Shown: one piece after another, positions 6,677 to 63,100 of the stretch | Numbering within the stretch: position 1 is the stretch's first letter | Layout: every line of letters begins with the position of its first letter | Assembly (NCBI GenBank): GCA_907165135.1 | Contig: OU015568.1 | Span: forward strand, 5,704,001 to 5,768,000 | Direction: 5' to 3' | DNA: 64,000 nt | Origin: Oikopleura dioica | Lineage: Eukaryota; Animalia; Chordata | The notes under the pieces: generated by a model | The model's database searches: none | Seen by the model: only the letters and a program-made list of their open reading frames with translations | What the model was told of the DNA's origin: nothing | Program-made: the position numbers and the translations under genes

Positions 6677-8130
6677 ATGATCGACGCTAACCTGAAAACC
6701 GAGCTCAGCGAGCTTGTCAAAAAAGATTCAACTCTTGTTAAACGAACAGACAGGAATCCGTTACGTCGACTCGGTACTGAAAAAGCGATCTTCATTTTCA
6801 AGAATCCTACAGTAGACTTTCTTTCAATGAATAAAACCCAGCAAAATGCTTACTCAGAAGAAGCCAAAAACTTTCTCGAGTCTGAGGGCGATGGAATGAT
6901 CTTCTCCGTTGAAAGAGAAAGACCAGCTACTGTCAGAATAATCAAGAAGGAAGAAAATCTTGAAAATCAAGAGACACCAGAAGACTCCAAAAATCAAACA
7001 ATTTCTGAAGTCTCGAAGCTTGTTGATGAGGGAAAAATTTCCATGACCGAGCTGGAAGTTCTATTGACAGCTTTTCGGGAACAAAACGCTCAGGATAACC
7101 ACGCTCAGTCAACTGCAGTGAAAGAAGAAGCAGTACCACAAACGTCTCAAACTGTCGATAATCTTACTGCTGAAATCACAAACATCCAGGAACTTGTCGA
7201 CACAGGAAAAATAAGTCCAGAAGAAATAAGACTTCTTCTCGGTGCTTTCCGCGAACCAGAAGCTACAAAAACCAGATCAGCATCCGAACCAAGAAAAATT
7301 CTTCCAAAGAATACCCAAAAGTCTCCTACAAGAAGAACCCCAAACGTCAAAGTGAAAAGCCCGAAATTCGATGCAAGCCTTCCTGTTTCTGCATGGATTC
7401 GAAATATGGAAATCTACGGAAAAATATCGTCCCTAGATGATGAATCCCTGATCACAGTTGCTCTAAGCAGCCTACTTTCAGAAGAAGAGGGAAGTCACAT
7501 AATCGAATCACTCACAAACGACGAGCTCTGCAAATGGACGCTTTTCAAAAACAAACTTCTTGATACTCTTGGAAAAAGACGTGACCATGACAAGCATGAA
7601 TTTGAAAACTACATGCGTGGATCAGATTCGTTCGGAGTCTGTATGGCAAAATTGTCCTCTTACTACAAACAAGGTTACGATATAACAGAGCAGCGCCGCA
7701 CAGATCAAGAGCTTCTCATTGAACGATTCTGCAAGGCACAAGATGACAAGCTTCAAGAGCTCCTGCTGCGAGAAAAAGGATCTCTGAATATGCAAAGTAT
7801 TGTACGCCGAGCAAACGAGCTTGAACGATCGCAGAAAACAAAAACAAAGGAAGTCAACTTTGCAATCCCTCAAGTTGCAGCACATGAGAATCTTGAGAAG
7901 AAAATCGAGAATTTGACTGAAATCGTGCAGAAAATGGTAAAAGCTGATGCTGAGCGCAAGAAAAACAGCAAGCTCCGAAAAAGCGACAACCAATTGACCA
8001 AGAAAAGACACAAGGTTACTGCATGAAATTTATCCGCGACGGAAAATGCTCGTATGGAGCAACATGCAAATATATCCATGATTCTGACAACACGCCATTT
8101 GATGTTAAGGAATACGCTAAGACATTGTGA
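6677..8130 (+). CDS. gag: Gag with C-terminal CCCH zinc finger (one -1 break near 7957)
   Basis: ORF 6677-8026 has capsid-like motifs (FDASLPVSAWIRNME; GVCMAKLSSYY). The -1 frame continues QGYCMKFIRDGKCSYGATCKYIH to TGA at 8128-8130. An upstream in-frame ATG at 6602 is cut off by TAA at 6629. Confidence 0.85.
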
Positions 8131-11100
8131 CTAGGAATTGAACTAACATGCCCTAACTACCTATCTTGTCCAAAGTCACTTAAATTTGTCAATGTCACGA
8201 TCAGCAACTACACCGTCCCTGCCCTTGTGGATTCTGCCTGTTCCCGGACATGTATCGACTCTTCTTTACCGTTCATAGGAAAAACAACAAAATCAAAACT
8301 TCAAGTCTATTGCGCAAACAACCAGATCATAACTCCAGATGTTCTCTCTACGCCGCTTTTTATGGAAATTAAAACAATGGATGGTCCTCTACACCTGAAA
8401 ACACAACCGCTTATCATCAAACACTTATGTGTCCCAATCATACTTGGACTGGACCACCTTCATGATCTACAAATCAGCGCAGACAACGACTTCATACTCA
8501 TTAATCAAAAACGAATCAAAATTGTACATCCTGATCTCAACAAAAATTCAAACATCAAAGTCAACGCCCTAAACGCAATTGTAGAAATCGACCTTGATGA
8601 TAAAAACGAAAAAAAATCTTTAGAAAAATTCCAAAAACTTCGTAGTCAAAAAGCAGCCAAAATCAATTTCCAGCCAGAAATTGGTTCATATGGACAGACA
8701 ACCGAAGACCAAAAACAAAAACTTTTCGCCCTTAATTGTAAATATCGCCTTTCATATTCAATGGATGACTCTGACCTTGGCAAAATCCATGGATATCGAT
8801 TCTCTATGCCATTTCATAATGAGGAAGCAACAACTCATCAACCGCCGCGCCCTATTGCTATTCATCTACAACCCGTAGTTGACTCTCAATTCGAAGTTTG
8901 GGAATCACTCGATGTTATTGGAGAAACGCAATCACCGAATAACGTGCCTTTGCTGGTTCTCAAGAAAGCTGACGGAAGTCACCGAGTCTCAGCTGATGCC
9001 CGAAACCTGAACGCCTTACTAGTCAAGGACAGGTTCCCACTACCATCTATGCAACAAATTTTCTACGAAATCGGTAAACGTCTTTCCAACAAAAACTCCT
9101 GTTTCATCTCAAACTTCGACTTACACCGAGGTTACTGGCAACTTCAAACACTCGAAAAAGATCGTCCAAAAATGGCGTTCTCCCATAGCAACAAACACTA
9201 TGCAGCGCATAGAATGCTTTATGGAGTAGCCACTGGACCTGCAGCATTTTCCAGATGCATGGCCAAAATCCTTAATCATGAGTCTATTATATGCTATCTT
9301 GATGACATTATTGCGATTGATGGAGATTTCGAAAGCCATTTTGCGACAATCGAATTCATCTTAAAGACATGCCAAGATCATGGAATGCTTCTCTCGCCAA
9401 AGAAAGTCTTCTTGTGCAAACCAGAACTCAATTTTCTTGGACACTCAATCTCTAAAAATGGAATCCAGACAAGCGAAAAACATTTGAAAGTCATACGAGA
9501 TCTGGAACCGCCCAAAACCGTGACGAAGTAAAGCGAATGTTAGGCTCAATAAATTACAACCTAAAATTCGTACGAAACGGCTCTTCTATTCTCCAGCCGC
9601 TGTATGAACTCACTTCTAAAAATCGCGATTTCATCTGGGAAGAAAAACACCAAACTGCATTCACCGACATCAAAAAGAAACTTCTTGAACGACCCTGCTT
9701 AGCCCATTATAAAGAAGGATCCGAACTTATCCTTGTTACCGACAGCTCAGGATCGAAAATTGGCGGCTGCCTATACCAAAAAGAAGATGATCAGCTTCAC
9801 CCGCTTGGATACTTTTCGAAAGCTCTTTCAGGACCTGATCTCCGACGAAGTATGCGAGAAAAAGAACTTTTCGCACTTGGTTTATCAATCAGTTTCTTCG
9901 AATTCTACCTATTGAACACGACTTTCACAGCTGTGGTAGACCATAAGAGTCTCCTCTTTCTATTCAAGGAGCAAGGAGAATTGAAGAAGAATGATATAAA
10001 AAAGATGAATATCTTAAACTATCTCCTTCGATTCGATTTTCGAATTCTACATCGGGAAGGAAACTCACCAATAATAGCAACTGCAGATTGGCTAAGTCGT
10101 CTTCCTGAATACAAAAGCACTGAACTCGAAAAAGATGCTGAAAACTTTGATGGAATCCCGGACACTGTCCTGCTGCTACATACAGTTGTTCCAGAAAGCA
10201 AAAAGAAGATTATTTTTTCGTTCAGCGACAGATCCTTCGACGAGGATAAAATGAATACTCTTCAAATGGAATGCAGATCTACGCGTAACATTATCGAAAA
10301 AGTGAAACGGAATCCAACACCTCCTTTTAAAATCAAAAAGAATGTTCTCTTCAAAGATGATCGGCTTGTGCTACCAAATAATCTCAGTGAAGAATTCTTA
10401 CAGTACTTACACTGTATCACAGGACACTGTGGATCAAAACAACTAAACATCCTCTGCAGAAAATTCTACATCCACCAAATCCAGCACAAACTCGCCAACT
10501 CACTCGATTTTGCCCAACATGTATCCAGATAAAACCAATGCCGAAGTTGAAACCTTCAATGATCGAAAATCGACGTTTCGCAGAAACACCGTTTTCAAAA
10601 ACTCACTTCGATCTTGTTGACTACTACAGGCCTGACGCTGCTGGAAAAAGATACCTACTTACTGCAATGGACTCACTCACAGGATTCCTCGATGGTATAC
10701 CCTTAACTCGAAAAACTGACGAAGTCGTCGCGAAACAACTCCTCAATCTTATACTGACGCATGGTATTACCGGCGATGCAATTACAGACAACGGAGCCGA
10801 GCTAAATGGACCACTTGTCACAGAAATCTTCAAACGCTTTGAAATCCGTCATACAACAACTACAGCTTATCGAAGCCAAAGTAATGGTCAACTCGAGCGA
10901 GTTCACCGGGAAATACACCTGAAGCTCAAAAGCTTGAATGCTTCAAACAAAAACTGGTCCTCAGCGTGGCCAATGAGCAAATACTTTATCAATAACCTTC
11001 CAAAAGAATCTTTGGATGGACTCAGCGCAAATGAAGCCTACTATGGAAGAAGTTTTCATCCACCATTCCAGACAAATTTCGACGCAAAAGGCCCTGGAAA

Positions 11101-29700: not shown

Positions 29701-30409
29701 CATCCCAGCTGATATTCTGACAATGAATATGATTGAATGGTATCTCTACGAAAACCCAAAAGTCATCGAAGAGAAAGTCCAGTGGCTCTCTTTTCCATAA
29801 GAACAGATAATGAAAATAGCCGAAAACAATCCAAAGAAGGCAGAAAAATGTCCAATAAAGTCCATCCGCCAGAGTACTAGAAATAAGAAATATTCCACTT
29901 TTCTTTTGATAGAAAATTTTGACTTCGATTATCTGATTGACTATCAATTCTGAACCTCCCAGAAAAACGTCGTCAAAAATACAGAAAATCCGTAAAACGC
30001 GAGACAGCTTCTTGCATGGCTATTTGTGTCATAGTCATCGACGATGGTAAAAGTCGCATCACAAATTTTTAAAAGCATGAAAAACCAATAAAAAAGATAC
30101 CATATAAAATGAATTGTGAAAAAATAAACCATCGTACAAAAAACAAACGAGACATGAATAGGCGCATAAAGAAGCCAAAAACAAAGTTCAAGAAAAGCCC
30201 ACATTTTTTCAGTTGATTTTAATCTCTCTGGACAGAGAAATATTGACACCAACAACTTCCATTTGCATGTATTTTCGTTTCGGGGAGACGTTATCACGGG
30301 GAAAACAAATAACTCTGTAGGAAGGCATTTTCCTCAGTAACCTATAGCTTACATTCGATTCGATAAACAAGCAGTTAAAAAAAGTCGGTTATTTATTTTC
30401 GTTTCAAGA

Positions 30410-31646
30410 CTAGAGTTTTCTCATAATAATCAAGAACAGAATCAGAGCGAGGAGAATCTTCCAGTTGAGGAGATGCGAGTCAGGCACTTCAAAGTACGGT
30501 GGAAGAATGTTCATGAACCACAGAGTCGCCAAAGCGATGATGATGATCAATCGCAGCACGATTGAAATTGTCTGCTTCCTCACCATCGCCTAATAAAAAC
30601 CAATCAATAAAGGTGTTCGAAGCAAAATGGCACCTTGTAGTTGACATTCTCTGCCAGCTCAGCGATCACTCCCCCGAGGCGATTTTTATGTGGAAGCGGG
30701 CAGGAAGGAACTGGTTTTTCAAGAAACTTGCAAATCGGTTCCCAGCCATCTTCGATCTTCCAAATCAACAGTTGGTCCTTTGGGCAAGTATTCATCACGT
30801 ACATATTGTGCATTCTACGGAGAAGATATTGATGATGTTTGGAAGGAAGGAAAACCTGTATTTGAGGCGATGAATGTCCATATTTTCGCCGACAAAGTCG
30901 CGCGATTCTGGGCCGAGCAGAAGCGGGCGAATCCAGTCCATGTAAAGACCCATCGCTCGGGATGAATGATTGAAGACCCAACTGTAGATGCCGCGGTGGA
31001 GCCTCCACCAGGACATTTCTTTGAAAGTATCTCGCTCCACCTTAAGGGCATCACCTCATTAAACAACCGAAAGCACAAGCAGTACCTGAAGATGTTTGTG
31101 AACAGAATTCGCCCAGGCGTCTTCGTCCCTGATCGCCAAAATCACTAGAAAATGGCTTAAAATTGACCTTCATCAATGATTTTTTGCACCCTTAGCATTC
31201 GGAAATTGCTTCAAAATCTGTTCCCAATAAGCATTGTGCGGCAAATCGACGCACGCCGTGTAGCCATCCTTATTTCCCGGTCCAAAGAGCTTCATCAGAA
31301 CGCTATTTGGATCCTTGCCATTTGCAATTTTCTCCCAATCCTGCCAGTGGCGATAAACGGCCTCGGGCGCGTCGCAAACTTTGTACCCTAATTGCTGAAA
31401 AAACACATTTTCCGAAGATCTTTTCCCAACTTACAGTCAGCATAGCATTCATACTCTTCGTTCCAGTCTTACAGTAGCCCGCATTGATCACCTGTAGCCC
31501 AGGATTGGGACCACATTCTCCTGGGCTCGGCAACCTGTGCAGAAAACCTGAGTCAGGGTTTGAAGTATCTCTTTTTCCATGAGATTCTCCAAACCCTGAC
31601 TCAGGTTTTCTACACAGGTTTCTGAGCCCAGACATTCTCTATCCAT
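30410..31646 (-). CDS. P-loop sulfotransferase (Sulfotransfer_4-like) with two C-terminal TM helices
   Basis: VINAGYCKTGTKSM (PAPS-binding loop), LGYKVCD, ACVDLP, VILVIRD..W, GWEPICKFL..PVP..P.PHKN. Tail IVLRLIIIIALATLWF...KILLALILFLIIMRKL*. Confidence 0.75.
31521..31631. mobile_element. CTGGGCTC-TIR MITE forming the first intron of the sulfotransferase (Introner-like)
   Basis: ~38-bp TIRs and perfect 8-bp TSD ACATTCTC (31513-31520, 31632-31639). Confidence 0.9.
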
Positions 31647-31924
31647 CTCTTATCTTTTGGAAAAATGCTGACTCGGTAGAAAAAGAATTTGACAATTATG
31701 AAGTCGATCGATTGGAAATAAATAAAAATAAAAGTCGTAAAAAATGTTGATATCAAATCCAGGGGTGGTCTCACGTGCCTTTTTAAAACTAACTAAGGGT
31801 GAAAGCGAAACTATTTGGAACCGGAAGGCATTGGTTTTTATGGCGCCATCGATCATTTTCTAGTTCTGATGCCATGCTTTTTCTGATAAAACAGGGGGCA
31901 CCGATTTCAAGTGTCAACTCTGGC

Positions 31925-42530: not shown

Positions 42531-44144
42531 GTTTCAGTTGTGCTCGATTCACTTTTTGTCAATTTTGTCGGTTGTTTCATTTCATATCTGTTTGTTGTTT
42601 CATCGAGGAAGTACTGTACTACAGTACTACTGTAGTATCATTCTATCATATCATAAGAAAGAGGTTGGGAGTAGCCGATTGGAAAGTTAGGGTTAAGCCG
42701 ATATCGGCAACCTGTGAAGAAAGCCTGACTCAGGGTCTGAAAGATCTTAAATAAATTACCGACTAGCGCCTTTTTTTAAGAAACCGCAGAGCGTTGCCGA
42801 CATATTTTATGTATCCATCAAATTTCGATTCTTTTGAAGCCGCTCTGCGGCTTAATTAGAAAAAAGCTGCTACGCGGCTTTTCATTAAAAATCTTTCAGA
42901 CCCTGACTCAGGTTTTTTACACAGGTTTCCGAGCCTTGTTAATTAACCCGTTCGGATAATGACCATTTTGTTGGCAGAGCATTTTGTGGTTATTCGAGCC
43001 ATCTGCCAATGAATTGGTCAATGTGCGCGAAGGGGTTAAATAATATTTTAAATGAAAATCGATTTCTGTACGTTATTCTTTGTCTCAATAATTCGGGAAC
43101 TCTGGTTTATAATTTGTATAATCGTCGAGTTTCAAAAAGGCATTTTATGAAACTGCTCTCAGATGTGTTACGAATCCCAGCTCGCCAGTGAAAACAACTC
43201 CCAATGGAGTCGCAACTCTTGGTAATCATTCTCAATGTAAATAAGAAACTTTCTTTTTTTCTTCCATTTTTTAACGAAAATTCTAGCCGCCTTTTTTCAT
43301 TTCGCTAACAACAATTCTAGCGCACCATGTGTACAGAACGCGAACGCTGAGCAAAAGCGAAATGGAACAGAATCTGACGTTTTTGCCCCAAAGCATCGAA
43401 AAACTTCCCCTTCAGGAGACTGCCATCTGAACTCCAGAAAAATATTATTTTATTTTCAAAAATTGCTTTCTTCACAAAACTGCCAGCTTTCCAATAAATG
43501 CAAATACTAACAAAAAAATGACAATTTTTACAAATTATGAAGGAAAAAGTCGCAAAGAACTTCAATGTCGTCATGTCCAGTTTTCTCCGCTAAGTTGTCT
43601 TCTTTTGCATTTTCCATCATTTCTTGAAATTATTATATTATTTCTTCCTATATTATTATTTAATTTCTTCCTTGCTCTAGAATTTACCTTGCAAGCATTC
43701 AAATCGAAGTCTTTCCTGTTCGTTTTCGTCATTTTTTCTTCTTACTTTTTCACTGTAAACTGGTTGACCAAGCAAGCAAAAAAGTAATAAGCAAAAGAAA
43801 GAATAAAGCATAATTGTCAAAAAATTTTATGAAAAAATGTCTATTCTGATCAGCGCTCGGAAATTCGCACGCTCAAATGAAGCCCTGGTTCGATTATTTC
43901 TACGTTAACTTTATATTTCCGACCAAGAAGTTCTTTTAAACCCCGCTAAAAGTAAAAAAAACAAAGAAGAATCCTGGACTGACCCCAAATGTCCCGCCTT
44001 GCGTTTTCTTTGCTTTGCTTGTTAGTTATTACGATCTCTTTGCGCCAACACTTGCCTTTGTCCCGTAACATTTGATATTTGCATATCTTCTATTTAACCC
44101 GCCTCCCGCCTCCCCAAACCTCAATTTTACAAAAAAAAAAAACG

Positions 44145-48502: not shown

Positions 48503-50097
48503 ATGAAAAAGCTTTCGTTCTTTTTCTTATTTGCCGCGGAGAAAACAGTTTGCTCAAGAAGCTACTACTACTACGGATATCACAAGGAGGATCCTTATGC
48601 AGAGAGTCCTTGCTACTCGGACAACCACAATTGCCATCCGACCGAAAATTGCGTCCCAGAGGGTCAGCATCTTTACCAATGCTGCGATATGGGCTACAAG
48701 TACGATTACAGCACTCATTGTCGCCAGGGAAATCGTGAGTTTTGAGTCGAACGGGTCGAAAATTAGAAAAAATTCTAGCGCACCCGTGCCTTGAAAAAAA
48801 TACCTGTAATGATGGAGAGTTTTGCCATCGAATCGTCAAGCCAAATGAAGAAACTAACGATTACGAGTGCATCAAAAAGGATGACAAGTGCATCGGTAAT
48901 CGCTCGTACCAATCTTTATCTACCATTTTGAAATTAAGGGGTGGCAATGTGCACGGAGTTCTACCAAGGCTCCTGTTCGGCCAACAACAAAGAGGAAAAG
49001 CAACCAATCAGAATCGCTGTCAAGAGCGTTGACGACTGCTTCTGGGCTCCGCAACCTGTGTAAAAACCTGAGTCAGGGTCTGAGAAAATCTTTTTCGCGC
49101 CTTTCTAGACCCTGACTCAGGTTTTCAACACAGGTTTCGGAGCTCAGGACTGCTACAACGAGTGCAAAAACAACGAGGAATGCAAGGGCTTCGATTTGGA
49201 CGAAAAAGGTGGCTGTCTTCTTGCGTTTCAAGATTGCCGCGAGAAGGATTTAGACAAACACCCAATTTTCGAGTGAGGCCCCTTTTATAATAAGATTTTC
49301 AATTTATTTCAGAAAATACTCGGATCACAAAGACTTCTATTATTATTATCAAGAATACTACTGGAAAGACCAAAGCGTAGAGAAAAAGCAGCTCTCTTAC
49401 ACTTATTACCCAATGAAGGGATGTTTCACTCCAGGTTTGAGCACAATTCTAGCTGTCTGGCTCATTTTAGAGCTCTAGAACGGGATGAAGACTGCGACAA
49501 AACCCTCGCTGATCATCTTGAGGACATTTACTTTGATCTTCTCGGACGAATGGACAAGCTAGCGCCGGTTTTTCTCGCCCAATTCGCGAAAAAGAAAGAT
49601 AGAGAAAATGAAGAGCGCGAGTTTCGGAAAAAAGGAAAGTTCAAAAAATAATGATCAGACAAAAGCCGACAAAAAACCTGAGTCAGGGTAAAAGAGAAAA
49701 ATCCGCCAAGCCGATCTTTCGAACCCTGACTCAGGTTTTTAACACAGGTTTTCGAGCCGAGGCTTTCAACATTTATTGAACTAAGGAAAGTGATTATGCT
49801 TGTGACAGTACTCGGCTCGATTCTGGTTGTTCTAGCGTTCATTTTCGTTGTTTTTCGGATCGTAAGAAGCAGCCGAAAAGCTGACCCAGGAGTCCAAATG
49901 ACTGAAAATCGACAACATCATCAAAATCCGGCTCCGATTTCGGATTCATCTGTTACTGGCGTTGTTGCTCCTTTTCCATTCAACGGTAATCAGAGCAAAT
50001 AAAAACCATAATCAACGATTTCTATTAAGATTCCGCTCCAACATACTCCGAAATCGACGAATTTGGTTCAAATGTAAATCTCGCCAAGTCTTTTTAA
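48503..50097 (+). CDS. Type I membrane protein with EGF-like and PAN/apple-like domains
   Basis: Signal peptide, two Cys-rich EGF-like units, CTEFYQGSC...SVDDCYNECKNNEECKGF...GGCLL, TM VIMLVTVLGSILVVLAFIFVVF, and cytoplasmic PTYSEI. Confidence 0.65.
49042..49147. mobile_element. CTGGGCTC-TIR MITE forming an intron in the PAN domain (Introner-like)
   Basis: TSD GACTGCTT / GACTGCTA (49034-49041, 49148-49155). The element ends ...gagctcAG. Confidence 0.85.
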
Positions 50098-52116: not shown

Positions 52117-54169
52117 TGAAAAGCCTAACCCTTTTTTTCTTTTTATTACATTTCTTAGTTCAAATAATAATAAAAGATTTACGAAAAGGCTGCATGAACC
52201 CTCTTCTGAAAATTAAAAATGCGTTTAAATTGAGATTGAACGAGTAAGCAGGACATTTTTCGGAAAATAAAGCAGAATTCATTTTTCAAAAATAGAAAAT
52301 AAAGGGCGGAACTCAAAATCAGAATTTTCCTCCTTGATTTCAAGCAATAAAAACTCGAAAACAAAAGCTCTTTCACTTGTTTTAGCGCTGTCTACTTTTT
52401 TTCTCGAAGTCGAAAACAGACCAGGGTCAAGTTCAAAAAAAATCTAAAATTCACACACTGTTATAATAATTTTTAATTTTTTTTTTGAAAAAATTATTTA
52501 TAATTTGCATACTCTGTAGTTTTCATTTTTAGTCATCCTTGATTTTTTTCAAAGCCGGTCTATATTAAATAGACTCTGACGATTAATCACGTGATAACAT
52601 TTTTTGAATGAAAAGAAATCGATCTCATGGATCGACCTTGTTTAAAAAAAGTAGACTTCAAAATGAACAACATAGAAAATTTTGCACAGGGTCATGGAAT
52701 GTTGACTTGTCTAGGGCGTGTTTGCTCTTTCAGCTCATAAAAAAAATGATGAAAAACTTGAAAATTTTAGTTTCCAAGCTAGAATTTTCAAGGAAAAAAT
52801 AATTAAGAACTTCATGTTTTTCCGTCAAAATAATACTGCTTTCATGAAGTAGCCAAAGTCGGGTAAAAAGAATGATTCGCTTAGTTTTGATTTGATTGAA
52901 AATAAGGGTGTCACTGTCTAAAAAGTCGAACTCAAAATCTCGATTCTCTTTTTTGACAATTATTTCAAAAAAAGGCTCCAAAAAAGAGGGCTAGAATGGC
53001 CATTTTTTCTTGCTGTTGGATGAAAAATGATAAGCACTAAAAGAAAGATAAGCTTTAAAGTTTAAACTTTTAAGAAAGTCCGGCCGAGGTCAGATTTAAT
53101 TCGTGACCTCTGCGAGCAGTCCATCTCGGAAGTAGGTCAGTCTTCATTTGTTAAACTCTCGATTGGTCGCAATGGTTTAGCCCTGTCCAATCAGGAGGGC
53201 CCTTTCGCCTCGATCTCGAGCTCAATTCCGCTTCTACGCGCTGAAACTAGTTACATAACTCGTATTTACCGATTTTTCACCTTTCTCTCGTCGATTTCGG
53301 CCACTTTTCGACCTCCCCAGGTCATCCAGAGAGTTAATAGAGAGTCCTGACCAATCATAGTCCTCCAGACTAGTTACGTAATAGCTATTACATAACTAGT
53401 AGTTATGTAACAATTTGAGAACTGGCCCAGTTGCGTTCAGACGCCATTTTTCACCAAAACGAAGAAAACAATAACGAAAAAATCGATTGCGAAAAACAAC
53501 TTCATTTCAATAATTACGAATTAGTTGCTAAGTATTATTTAACTGCTATTATAAAAGAAAATGGAGGGGGCTTATTGAAGCGGAAAATAAGTAATCGAGC
53601 GATGGAGGGCTTTGATTTAGGAATAAAATTTCACGCTCTATTGCATTTTTTCGATCCTGAAAAAGATTCTCCTTTTGCTTATGATAACAAAGTCACACCC
53701 TTATTGTTTCTCTGCAAAGAAACGATGAAGGTTTCAGCTTCCTTTTATCAAATTATATAAGGGTATCACTATCCATAATTTACCTGAAACCCATGAAAAT
53801 GTATTTGAGTTTTTAGTACTCTTATTGAGACTGTGCTCAGGAGCCTGTGTAGAAAACCTGAGTCAGGGTTTCAAATATCTCAAATGAAAAGCCGCGTAGC
53901 GGCTTTTTTCGAAAGTGGAGCCGCAAAGCGGCTTCGCTATAACATTGCAATCGAAAAAAAATTAAAGATCTTAAGACCCTGACTCAGGTTTTCAACACAG
54001 GTTGCCGGCTGGAAAATCGCTTGTAAATTTATATATATAGTTTCATATCTTGTGATTACTCTCACCCTACTCTTGAAAATATTATATAAGCGGTTGTATA
54101 AGACCTGTGAGAGTCTATTTTTAAGTCCATTGCTCAACACAGGCTTGTATTTAGAAGCGGTAGCTTCAG

Positions 54170-60117: not shown

Positions 60118-63100
60118 CTAATACGCTAGGACACTAAAATAGCTCAAAATCGAAAATCTGGGCTCAGCAACCTGTGTAGAAAACCTGAGTCAGGGTCTGA
60201 AACATAGTTAATGAAAAGCGGCTTTTTTAGATTTAATATTTCTTTAGATTTAATGAGATTTTTAACAATTTTTCGGATTTTTTTTTTCTTTCAGACCCTG
60301 ACTCAGATTTTCTACACAGGTTGCCGAGCCCGTTCGAAGATGACTCGTACGTAAATCGATTCATTTCTTCTTCGATGATGTCGAAAACGATGAATGTTGG
60401 GACGAGCCTCTTTCCCTTCAAACCGAGTTGATTTTCCATGACCATTAGTTTTCCGGAAACGATAAAGGTGTAAAGGTACGATTTGTCGTATCGATCGGGG
60501 GCTATTCGATCAGATTTGTAGGAAGAAATTATCGTCCAATGACCTTGATGAAGTCTGAAATCAAAAAATAGCGATAACCCGATATTTTGGCTCGACAACC
60601 TGTGAGGAAAACCTGAGTCAGGGAGTCAAAAATTTTCAATGAAAAGCCGCATTGCGGCTTTATTTTTTAAACGAAGCCGCCAAGCGGCTTTGCAAAATTA
60701 TTTTTTAGGTCGATTTTCAAATTCTAGCGGCTTTTCATGAGAATTTTTTTTTGACCCTGACTCAGGTTTTCTACATAGCTCGCCGAGCCCTGCCTTATAT
60801 TCAAAACTAACCTGTGAACATGAAAGTAGATATATCTCCAATCATAAATCTGATTCGAAGAAGTGACGAAAGTGATTCCCTCCCGATCCGGATACGCATC
60901 GAGAAAGACATTATCAACATGTTTCCGCTCGTCAAAATACGATGGGAGGTAGAAATTTTGAGACGTCCACGATTCCTCTCTTCGTTGAATGCCATGAAAA
61001 GTGTCAACCCGGATTTGCTGCCGAGAAAGGTTCAAAATCGTCTGAAATTTTCGATGAAAGGATGGAGCTAGAATTGAGACATACGAATTTTTGATTATGA
61101 GTGTACCCATGACTTCTTTTTTGAAAATCCTCGAAGGTAAATTGAAGCGGTTTTCGATAAAGAACTTCTGCAAGGCCTGAAGCTCGCGATTCATCAATTG
61201 TATAACAAACGTCTCTAGAATCAAATCAACTCAACGATTTACGGTTTTCTAGCTCTTACTGATTCTCCCTCGGTCCACAGACAAAAATCCTCTCAACAAC
61301 CGGCTCATTTACTTGAGCGCTAAGAATTCCATTTCCGCACAAAGAAGTGCCATATCTTCCAAAAACAAAGCCCGGCATATCTTCCCTCATCGACAAAACC
61401 CCTTCATTGCGGCCTTCCGTGTCGTATTTGAACAAATTCGCAGTCAGTTCAGGGGAGTAGTCGTTGTTGTTTCCAATAACAATCGTGGCGAAAATGTAAA
61501 AATGGCCTTGGAAAAATGTCGTGCAGACGGATCCGTCATAAGTTCCGAAAACAAAGAGCTCGGTGGTTTCGACTGTTTTTTCGTCGAAACTGACCAGCAT
61601 TGCTCGAAGCTGGGCTCGGCAACCTGTGTAGAAAACCTGAGTCAGGGTCTGAAAAATGTCTGAAGAAAAGCCGCGTAGCGGCTTCTTCAGATATAAAGCC
61701 GCAAACCTGCTTCGCAAAAAAATCTTTCAAAATCTGGCGAAGCCGCTTTGCGGCTTTATTTTTGAAGAAGCCGCTACGCGGCTTTTCATCAGAGATCTCT
61801 CAGACCCTGACTCAGGTTTTCTACCCAGGTTGCCGAGCCCAGGCCCCAAGAGTAGGTTCCGCATTCAAATCGGCAATCGTCTTTTTCTCATAAGCGACAA
61901 GTGTCTTTGGCGGGAATCCCTTTCGACATTGAAAATCGGGACAGGGACAACCTTTTGGACAGTTTTTCTGAAAAGGGCAAACGTCGTTGGAGTACTTTGA
62001 CCCGATTATTCGACAGATTTCGCGGCAGTTTGTCAGGTCCTCCAGCTTTGTGAGACTTGTTGGATCGCAGAGGGTTCGGCAAAGAGCGGTTTCGATTGAG
62101 AAGAGATACATGCATTGGTTTTTGTTTTCTTCGTTTTCGAAATCAGTAAAGGTTTCATTTTTTGCTTTGCGCTTTTTGACGAGCGCGATTTTCGGGCTTG
62201 GAAAGATGAATTCTCTGTAGTTGTCGTTATAAATGTCGCCGCAGTCGTACAAAGAAGCAGCGCATGCATCGAAATCGTAATCGTTTTTGATGCAGCTCTT
62301 GAATTTCATGACACAGGCGGATCCAAAAGAAGGGCGATATTTGACCATATCCCAGTGGATCAAATTCGAAGCGATCATGATCAGAATCCAAAAGATGGAA
62401 CCGAAAATTACCAGGTTGATGTATTGGTTCAAGGTTCCAAAGCCATGGTTCGAGACAGAGCTCCAAATTCACCTCACTCATGATTCACCTTGGTGAAGGT
62501 GGGTAAAGGTGAAAAAATTTCACCTCACCTCACCTAAATTTTTCGAAAATCGACTTTCACTCACCTTCACCTTGGGGTGAAATAGGGTGAAAATTTTTCA
62601 CCTCACCTCATCTCACCAATATTTTTTTGAAAATGAATTTTCACCTTATTTCACCAGGTGAAGTTGAGTGAAAGCCGATTTTTGGAAATTTTTGATAAAA
62701 ATGAGGTGAGGTGAAAATTTTTCACCTTCACCCACCTTCGCCTAGGTGAATCTTGGGTGAAGTGAATTCGGAACTCTGGTTCGAGATTTTGAACCTTTTT
62801 TCTCGCTTTCGATAGAGCTTCGGCTCGATTGGATAGAGATAGACCTCGTTGTTGGAGACAAATAACTCGCCCTCTGATTCGCAGCAAATGCAACGAACCT
62901 TGATTTTGAAGAAAATAGAGAGAATGTTAAGAAGTTACCTTTTCGATGCGTTCTCGTTGTATTTTTCTCATGATTTGAGCTCTGAATGAGGAATAGTTCC
63001 AGTGAACAGTTCTTTTCTTGAGAAAATTTAATCCTCCGCGGAGATAGATATTTCCTGGCTCCGAAGTTTCAAGAATATGACAGTGTAGTTCAGGAAGGTT

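Follow-up and report, generated by a model that had tools for sequence, protein, structure and literature searches.

A young, segregating hairpin transposon insertion in the first exon of an Oikopleura dioica sulfotransferase gene: a candidate nascent intron

RESULTS

A hairpin element interrupts exon 1 of a sulfotransferase gene

We analyzed a 64,000-nucleotide stretch of Oikopleura dioica DNA (assembly GCA_907165135.1, contig OU015568.1, positions 5,704,001 to 5,768,000 of the forward strand), which we call the window and number from its first base. Within it, a minus-strand gene of the Sulfotransfer_4 family (PF17784) carries a 111-bp miniature inverted-repeat transposable element (MITE) in its first exon. 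Exon 2 of this gene matched the PF17784 profile with an E value of 2.8e-08, and VINAGYCKTGTKSMNAMLT, which is encoded just downstream of the element, corresponds to profile positions 1 to 19. An exhaustive phmmer search with exon 2 identified P0001, a 295-amino-acid protein with 83% identity. P0001, P0017, and P0019 are annotated proteins of OKI2018_I69, the Okinawan reference assembly, which holds at least three homologues of the gene. When P0001, P0017, P0018, and P0021 were compared with the window by tblastn, all six exons aligned without a stop codon or frameshift, and the six exons are collinear with P0001 and P0017, which is also 295 amino acids long. By these alignments, the gene is otherwise intact. 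Its five ordinary introns are all GT-AG and 40 to 45 nt long, and the intron that follows the residues ...LT is common to the OKI2018_I69 homologues.

The element is built of two inverted arms (31521-31571 and 31581-31631) found with a repeat finder. The arms are 51 nt each and 90% complementary, and they are separated by a 9-nt loop; therefore, the entire 111 bp is a single hairpin. A preliminary description of this locus, made from the sequence alone, had the length of the element right but gave its terminal inverted repeats (TIRs) as about 38 bp, which is too short. The outermost 38 nt of the two arms mismatch at 3 positions, and the element ends in CAG whichever way round it is read. The RNA fold of the element region has an energy of -93.3 kcal/mol, compared with -40.8 ± 4.1 for shuffled sequence (z = -12.9). 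A perfect 8-bp direct repeat, ACATTCTC, flanks the element at 31513-31520 and 31632-31639, and in this the layout and coordinates read as they had been described. On the minus strand, the order is ...AAGAG ATG GAT A / GAGAATGT / CTGGGCTCAG...CCGAGCCCAG / GAGAATGT / GGT CCC AAT CCT GGG CTA CAG GTG ATC AAT GCG GGC.

The position of the element relative to the start codon was established by comparison with homologues. The full-length homologues all begin M-G-K-(E/G)-G-L-Q-V-I-(N/H)-A-G. With the element taken out, the window reads M-D-R-E-C-G-P-N-P-G-L-Q-V-I-N-A-G, in which M-D-R-E aligns with M-G-K-E. At two OKI2018_I69 loci, L001 and L002, exon 1 runs unbroken up to the shared ...LT intron. Because the homologue N termini align and exon 1 is uninterrupted at L001 and L002, we regard the ATG at 31646 as the native start codon, which puts the element 7 nt into the coding sequence, where homologues have no intron. 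This ATG has an A at -3 and a G at +4. When the region 30410-31646 was compared with L001 and L002 for synteny, the match was limited to the sulfotransferase gene and fragments of the MITE. At both loci, a gene for a protein of about 293 amino acids stands upstream of the sulfotransferase gene, which suggests a duplicated two-gene block.

An allele with an exact empty site is present in a second DNA sample

Three RNA runs and the DNA run X29, which comes from a different study, were mapped onto positions 30300 to 31900. X29 contains a 0.32 share of the window's sequence words, and its contigs show about 2.5 to 3.5% divergence from the window. In one contig of X29 (200 nt, depth 75), the match to the window breaks off after 31520 and picks up again at 31661. 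Between the two matching parts stand 19 letters, TATCCATTTTTTTTCGAGA, which start with TATCCAT, the reverse complement of ATGGATA. The contig holds a single copy of ACATTCTC and no element, and ATG GAT AGA GAA TGT GGT CCC is contiguous in it.

This exact empty site has three consequences. The 8-bp repeat is confirmed as a target-site duplication (TSD), the insertion is young and polymorphic, and X29 has no intron at the orthologous position. The preliminary description had suggested looking for presence and absence of an intron among strains, and the empty site shows a polymorphism of the inserted element. An orthologous intron without the TIRs was also looked for, and none was found; the exon DNA of X29 is contiguous there. 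The insertion probably postdates the split of the two haplotypes, which are about 3% divergent. An old intron that was later invaded by a MITE is ruled out by the X29 empty allele together with the uninterrupted exon 1 of the homologues.

The two strains also differ directly upstream of the ATG, where the 5' untranslated region (UTR) has been replaced. The replaced segment is 21 nt in the window (31640-31660, TATCCATCTCTTATCTTTTGG) and 19 nt in X29 (TATCCATTTTTTTTCGAGA). Few differences between the window and X29 are listed in the coding exon beside it.

The element belongs to a recently active family

The 38-nt terminus of the element occurs 5 times in the window, where 0 occurrences are expected, and the 17-nt core AACCTGAGTCAGGGTTT occurs 20 times, where 0.01 are expected. 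By BLAST and a terminus search, about 12 copies or fragments of the family, 106 to about 239 bp in size, were counted in the 64 kb. The termini of the family read CTGRGCTC...GAGCYCAG. In X29, thousands of contigs stack exactly on 31521-31631, with a summed depth roughly a thousand-fold that of the flanks. The contigs end in unrelated AT-rich flanks at 31520/31521 and 31631/31632, which pins the ends of the element. The family has been active recently, as 942 of the X29 pieces on this region share 99% likeness or more. The terminus and core counts and the X29 pile-up exclude chance as the source of the inverted and direct repeats. The element has the features by which MITEs are recognized: it has TIRs and a TSD with a known empty site, and it is short, non-coding, and present in many copies.

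OKI2018_I69 also has the family. The copy at L001:16627-16730 is 83% identical across the full 111 nt and lies in AT-rich surroundings that look non-coding, and L001:13589-13680 is a further copy. The copy at L002:8305-8347 is within an apparent canonical GT-AG intron. At L002:8160-8260, in the first intron of the gene at 8123-9364, we observed degenerate tandem units (AAAACCTGAGTA / AAAACCTGTGTA...) that resemble the MITE core. They are followed by a solo TIR remnant ending ...CTGAGACCAG, within an apparent canonical GT...AG intron.

Longer variants of the MITE carry additional structure. AGCCGC-NNN-GCGGCT mini-hairpins occur 11 times in the window (0.01 expected), at 567-682, 42838-42852, 53890-53933, 60645-60689, and 61669-61783, in or beside the longer variants. 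The 111-bp copy is free of them. The family seems to consist of a TIR shell that stays the same and GC-rich stem-loop modules that vary in number.

Of the copies in the window, four touch on coding sequence, and three other copies besides the one in the sulfotransferase gene have flanking 8-bp repeats (Table 1; slashes in sequences mark cuts or, in the TSD entry, the two repeat copies). The TSD of the copy at 49042 begins with GA in the sense direction, the donor context is AC/GAC, and formal GA..AG removal fuses ...KSVDDC with (Y/F)NECKNNEECKGFDL (NECKNNEEC). The sequence right after this copy, beginning with its very first residue, matches positions 26 to 52 of the PAN_1 profile at a below-threshold E value of 0.017. 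The copy splits a PAN-like cysteine module, and it shares one plus-strand gene, with a signal peptide, a PAN-like module, and a transmembrane segment, with a further copy at 49655-49761. No scarless G*-AG cut is possible for the copy at 61610, which has an in-frame canonical option made of a GT inside the TIR (CCTGG/GTAGAA) and a downstream AG (GGTCAG/T). This copy reads CCTGG/GTAGAA where other copies read CCTGT/GTAGAA, which gives it a G at -1 of the candidate donor. For the copy at 60158, a scarless cut would be AT..AG. A sense-strand TSD that starts with GA, together with a scarless GA..AG cut, is therefore found in 2 of the 4 copies, those at 31521 and 49042. Since long frames remain open to either side of the copy at 49042 and of the copy at 61610, we suggest that some copies leave the mRNA somehow, though not necessarily with the TSD as donor and the TIR as acceptor.

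Table 1. Positions of the element, its host gene, and related copies in the window
Feature	Coordinates	Strand	Remarks
MITE in the sulfotransferase gene	31521..31631	.	111 bp, near-perfect hairpin, termini CTGGGCTC...GAGCCCAG
TSD copy, 5' side in gene sense (GAGAATGT)	31632..31639	minus	first two bases are the candidate GA donor
TSD copy, 3' side in gene sense (GAGAATGT)	31513..31520	minus	codes part of R-E-C when empty or spliced
Native start and four bases (ATG GAT A)	31640..31646	minus	cut off from the remaining exon 1 by the insertion
Remaining exon 1 (GPNPGLQVINAGYCKTGTKSMNAMLT)	31435..31512	minus	holds the first part of the Sulfotransfer_4 domain with the GxxKTGT loop
Intron 1	31395..31434	minus	canonical GT-AG, 40 nt
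Exons 2 to 6 and four GT-AG introns (41-45 nt)	30410..31394	minus	stop codon at 30410-30412
Out-of-frame open reading frame from the native ATG, element retained	31488..31646	minus	52 codons
Second coding-sequence copy	49042..49147	plus	TSD GACTGCTT/GACTGCTA, 7/8; in-frame TAA
176-bp copy	60158..60333	minus	in the gene of the 61610 copy, 13 codons ahead of the stop codon; TSD 7/8
208-bp copy	60586..60793	minus	within an ordinary GT...AG intron of the same gene as the 61610 copy
233-bp copy	61610..61842	minus	TSD 6/8; between 203-codon and 115-codon open frames of one gene

Removal of the element restores the frame, and the candidate splice signals are poor

The preliminary description had claimed that the element can be taken out without a footprint, and we reproduced this. 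Removal of 31521-31639 (119 nt) gives M-D-R-E-C-G-P-N-P-G-L-Q-V-I-N-A-G..., which is the coding sequence of the empty allele. Formal GA...AG termini at this site restore the frame, and the junction would read ATGGATA/GAGAATGTGGTCCC (that is, ATGGATA/GAGAATGTGG). We counted the G*-AG cuts that keep the frame, are free of stops, and preserve NAGYCKTGTKS. There are 48, of which 13 have GT donors, and the scarless cut is one of the 48. Because so many in-frame cuts exist, frame restoration alone is weak evidence for splicing.

We then compared the candidate splice signals with those known from the species. The donor context is TA/GAG, without the AG before and A after that are the consensus of O. 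dioica GA-AG sites (PMC7072748). The candidate GA donor matches the 5' splice-site consensus at 3 to 4 of 8 positions and misses all three of the conserved flanking positions. Another GA donor, two bases downstream (GA/GAAUGU), is slightly better but shifts the frame. In the 3' arm, a CTGAC precedes the terminal CAG by about 32 nt and there is a TTTTCT run; a nearer, better-looking acceptor, TTTTCTGCACAG/, precedes the same CAG by 14 nt. All of these 3' signals are within the 51-bp stem, and the candidate splice signals as a whole are placed in the hairpin or at its foot. At 119 nt, a GA-AG intron here would be an outlier against the five 40- to 45-nt GT-AG introns of the gene.

The upstream TSD copy also contains an ATG (31635-31633). 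The open reading frame (ORF) that starts at this codon (31303..31635) crosses the element in frame into GECGPNPGLQVINAGYCKTGTKS.

Transcript and protein searches

RNA was sampled from three 2026 oligo-dT runs, of which 56 to 59% each was searched (about 18 million records in total). Each run gave 1 to 2 partial reads with 90 to 95% likeness in exons 4 and 5, and none near the element. These reads are probably cross-mapped from paralogues. Older RNA contig runs contained a 0.00 share of the window's sequence words, and the run searches gave no RNA run with the stretch. The large protein collection holds 46 homologues of P0001, and the product of this gene itself is not among them. The 110-amino-acid read-through ORF had no match in the protein collection, and a look-up of a neighboring 276-amino-acid ORF was without a match. 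In JGI metagenomes, the exon 1 pattern and the TIR pattern both gave 0 hits.

DISCUSSION

The element at 31521-31631 is a young, segregating insertion of a non-autonomous hairpin DNA transposon, a MITE with an 8-bp TSD, in exon 1 of a Sulfotransfer_4 gene of O. dioica. What the insertion does to the gene at present is a separate question, and of four readings we consider the most probable, at roughly 0.45, to be that the allele is disrupted or hypomorphic. We infer that the allele is raw material for intron gain, a candidate nascent intron and not an established one.

If the allele is disrupted or hypomorphic, the main effect of the insertion now would be to disrupt or strongly weaken the gene. 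Unspliced mRNA translated from the native ATG would yield an out-of-frame peptide of 52 codons. The candidate GA donor is a very poor match to U1 as well as to the O. dioica GA-AG consensus, and the 51-bp stem locks up the terminal CAG together with the CTGAC, which resembles a branch point, and the short run of pyrimidines. There are also several paralogues that could compensate for loss of the gene.

A number of observations weigh against a disrupted allele. O. dioica tolerates 11 to 12% non-GT-AG introns (PMC8008620) and, together with one other animal, stands out for its number of GA-AG introns (PMC7072748). In the sister genus Fritillaria, non-canonical introns that derive from MITEs and carry TIRs and TSDs undergo efficient splicing, according to the review PMC11282704. 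The apparently older copies of the family that stand between long ORFs in the window (49042-49147 and 61610-61842) are hard to explain without removal from the mRNA. The lack of RNA reads is not evidence against splicing, as the runs may represent a stage, tissue, or lineage in which the gene is silent or too divergent to be mapped; weak expression or the decay of a broken message may also play a part.

Precise splicing of the element, as proposed in the preliminary description, is the next reading to consider. The cut would fall at A/GAGAAUGU, with GA supplied by the first bases of the upstream TSD copy, and after the CAG of the TIR. The 119 nt would be removed, MDRECGPNPGLQVINAG... would be restored, and the product would be the coding sequence of the empty allele. 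The hairpin would bring the two splice sites together, and CAG would be available in either orientation, with CTGAC and TTTTCT in the 3' arm. The abundance of GA-AG introns in O. dioica, the Fritillaria introns, and the sense GA-start TSD of the coding-sequence copy at 49042 all favor this reading. However, the runs searched gave no RNA in support of it, and the donor agrees poorly with the consensus (PMC7072748). A better donor, which shifts the frame, lies two bases on, a better acceptor lies 14 nt before the CAG, and the 3' signals are all inside the stem. Moreover, the coding copies at 61610 and 60158 have no scarless G-start removal. We regard a nascent scarless intron as possible but doubtful. 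We are equally tentative about the broader proposal that the family is an active chordate introner, in which exonic copies with a sense TSD starting with G would be removed exactly (GA...CAG) by a permissive spliceosome.

Ordinary GT-AG splicing in or around the element could instead rescue the gene imprecisely. A cut from the GT at 31613 to the AG at 31492 would yield MDRECLGSETC/VINAG..., and with the GT at 31600 or the one at 31594 as donor and the terminal CAG at 31521 as acceptor, 10 to 13 element-derived codons would be left. GT donors account for 13 of the 48 in-frame, stop-free cuts. Such products could be functional, because the N terminus before the 3'-phosphoadenosine 5'-phosphosulfate (PAPS) loop is variable; among homologues, the residues before LQVINAG differ in length and sequence. 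The copy at 61610-61842 offers a parallel, as its GT at the same TIR position, with G at -1, and its downstream AG make an in-frame junction. Against this stand the weakness of the GT sites (GTAGAA, GTCAGG, and GTTTGG) and their position inside the stem, and the RNA runs searched gave no read in support. We consider imprecise rescue unlikely.

Least probable of the four, and improbable in our view, is that the element stays in the mRNA and that translation begins at the ATG within the upstream TSD copy (31635), with MDRE replaced by a 40-residue, element-encoded leader. The ORF at 31303..31635 is in frame into GECGPNPGLQVINAGYCKTGTKS, and its residues 48 to 66 match the start of PF17784; but the native ATG, in a strong context 11 nt upstream, opens an overlapping out-of-frame ORF, because of which the second ATG would need leaky scanning, and a search of the protein collection gave no such protein.

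It is rare to observe the gain of an intron while it happens. In this case, an allele with the insertion and an exactly empty one coexist in one lineage of a chordate that can be cultured in the laboratory, which provides a clean natural test case for whether a newly inserted transposon is handled as an intron from the outset, without later adaptation. Also at stake is whether a non-canonical GA donor supplied by the TSD suffices. If the element is spliced, then the transposon-made introns of algae and Fritillaria would be extended to O. dioica and linked to the excess of GA-AG introns in this species. If the family is an introner, 31521-31631 would be an intron at birth whose intron-less allele still segregates, and the family would be a direct source of fast intron gain and of the GA-AG excess in O. 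dioica. If splicing proves false, the lesson would be that readings described as scarless and in frame are not to be taken at face value.

Comparison with known systems

The element shares several traits with hAT MITEs. It has an 8-bp TSD (8/8 here, and 7/8 at the copies at 49042 and 60158), short TIRs, no coding capacity, and a high copy number. The usual terminal motif of hAT elements is YARNG. This motif is absent, as the termini are CTGGG in the window and CTGAG at L001. The preliminary description had pointed to hAT from the 8-bp TSD; the length of the duplication agrees with that and the termini do not, and we treat hAT membership as a candidate assignment made from TSD length alone.

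Introns made by transposons are established across a broad range of eukaryotes (Gozashti et al. 2022, PMC9860276). Neither Oikopleura nor tunicates are named in the main text of that study, and our full-text literature searches found no description of MITE-derived introns in O. dioica. Like an introner, the element interrupts coding sequence where no intron was present ancestrally; introners generally differ in having hundreds to thousands of copies verified as spliced. In Micromonas pusilla and Aureococcus (Huff, Zilberman & Roy 2016), according to the review PMC11282704, a non-autonomous DNA transposon gives one splice site and the TSD gives the other, and removal is scarless. The preliminary description had equated a TSD donor and a TIR acceptor with the algal mechanism, but the Micromonas example in that review is the mirror image: there the element supplies the GT or GC donor and a 3-nt TSD supplies the AG, whereas in the O. 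dioica candidate the TSD would supply the GA donor and the TIR the AG.

The formal GA...AG termini are those of the GA-AG class published from the same species (Frey & Pucker 2020, PMC7072748). The flanks differ: the published sites have AG before and A after the GA, compared with TA/GAG here and AC/GAC at the copy in the PAN-like module. The candidate intron, at 119 nt, is also far above the median intron length of about 49 nt.

The most relevant comparison is with Fritillaria borealis (Henriet et al. 2019, Curr Biol), as presented in the review PMC11282704 and in PMC13326754. Introns there are mostly AG-AC or AG-AT, have TIRs and TSDs, and are handled by an adapted U2 spliceosome. An exonic TAC precedes the Fritillaria sites, and splicing of most introns in that genome has been shown with transcripts. 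In contrast, the O. dioica site has candidate GA-AG termini and an 8-bp TSD, and it is known here from DNA alone. Both have a larvacean host, short elements with TIRs and TSDs, lineage-specific positions in coding sequence, and non-GT termini. The idea is also the same in both, namely that a permissive U2 spliceosome would neutralize transposon insertions.

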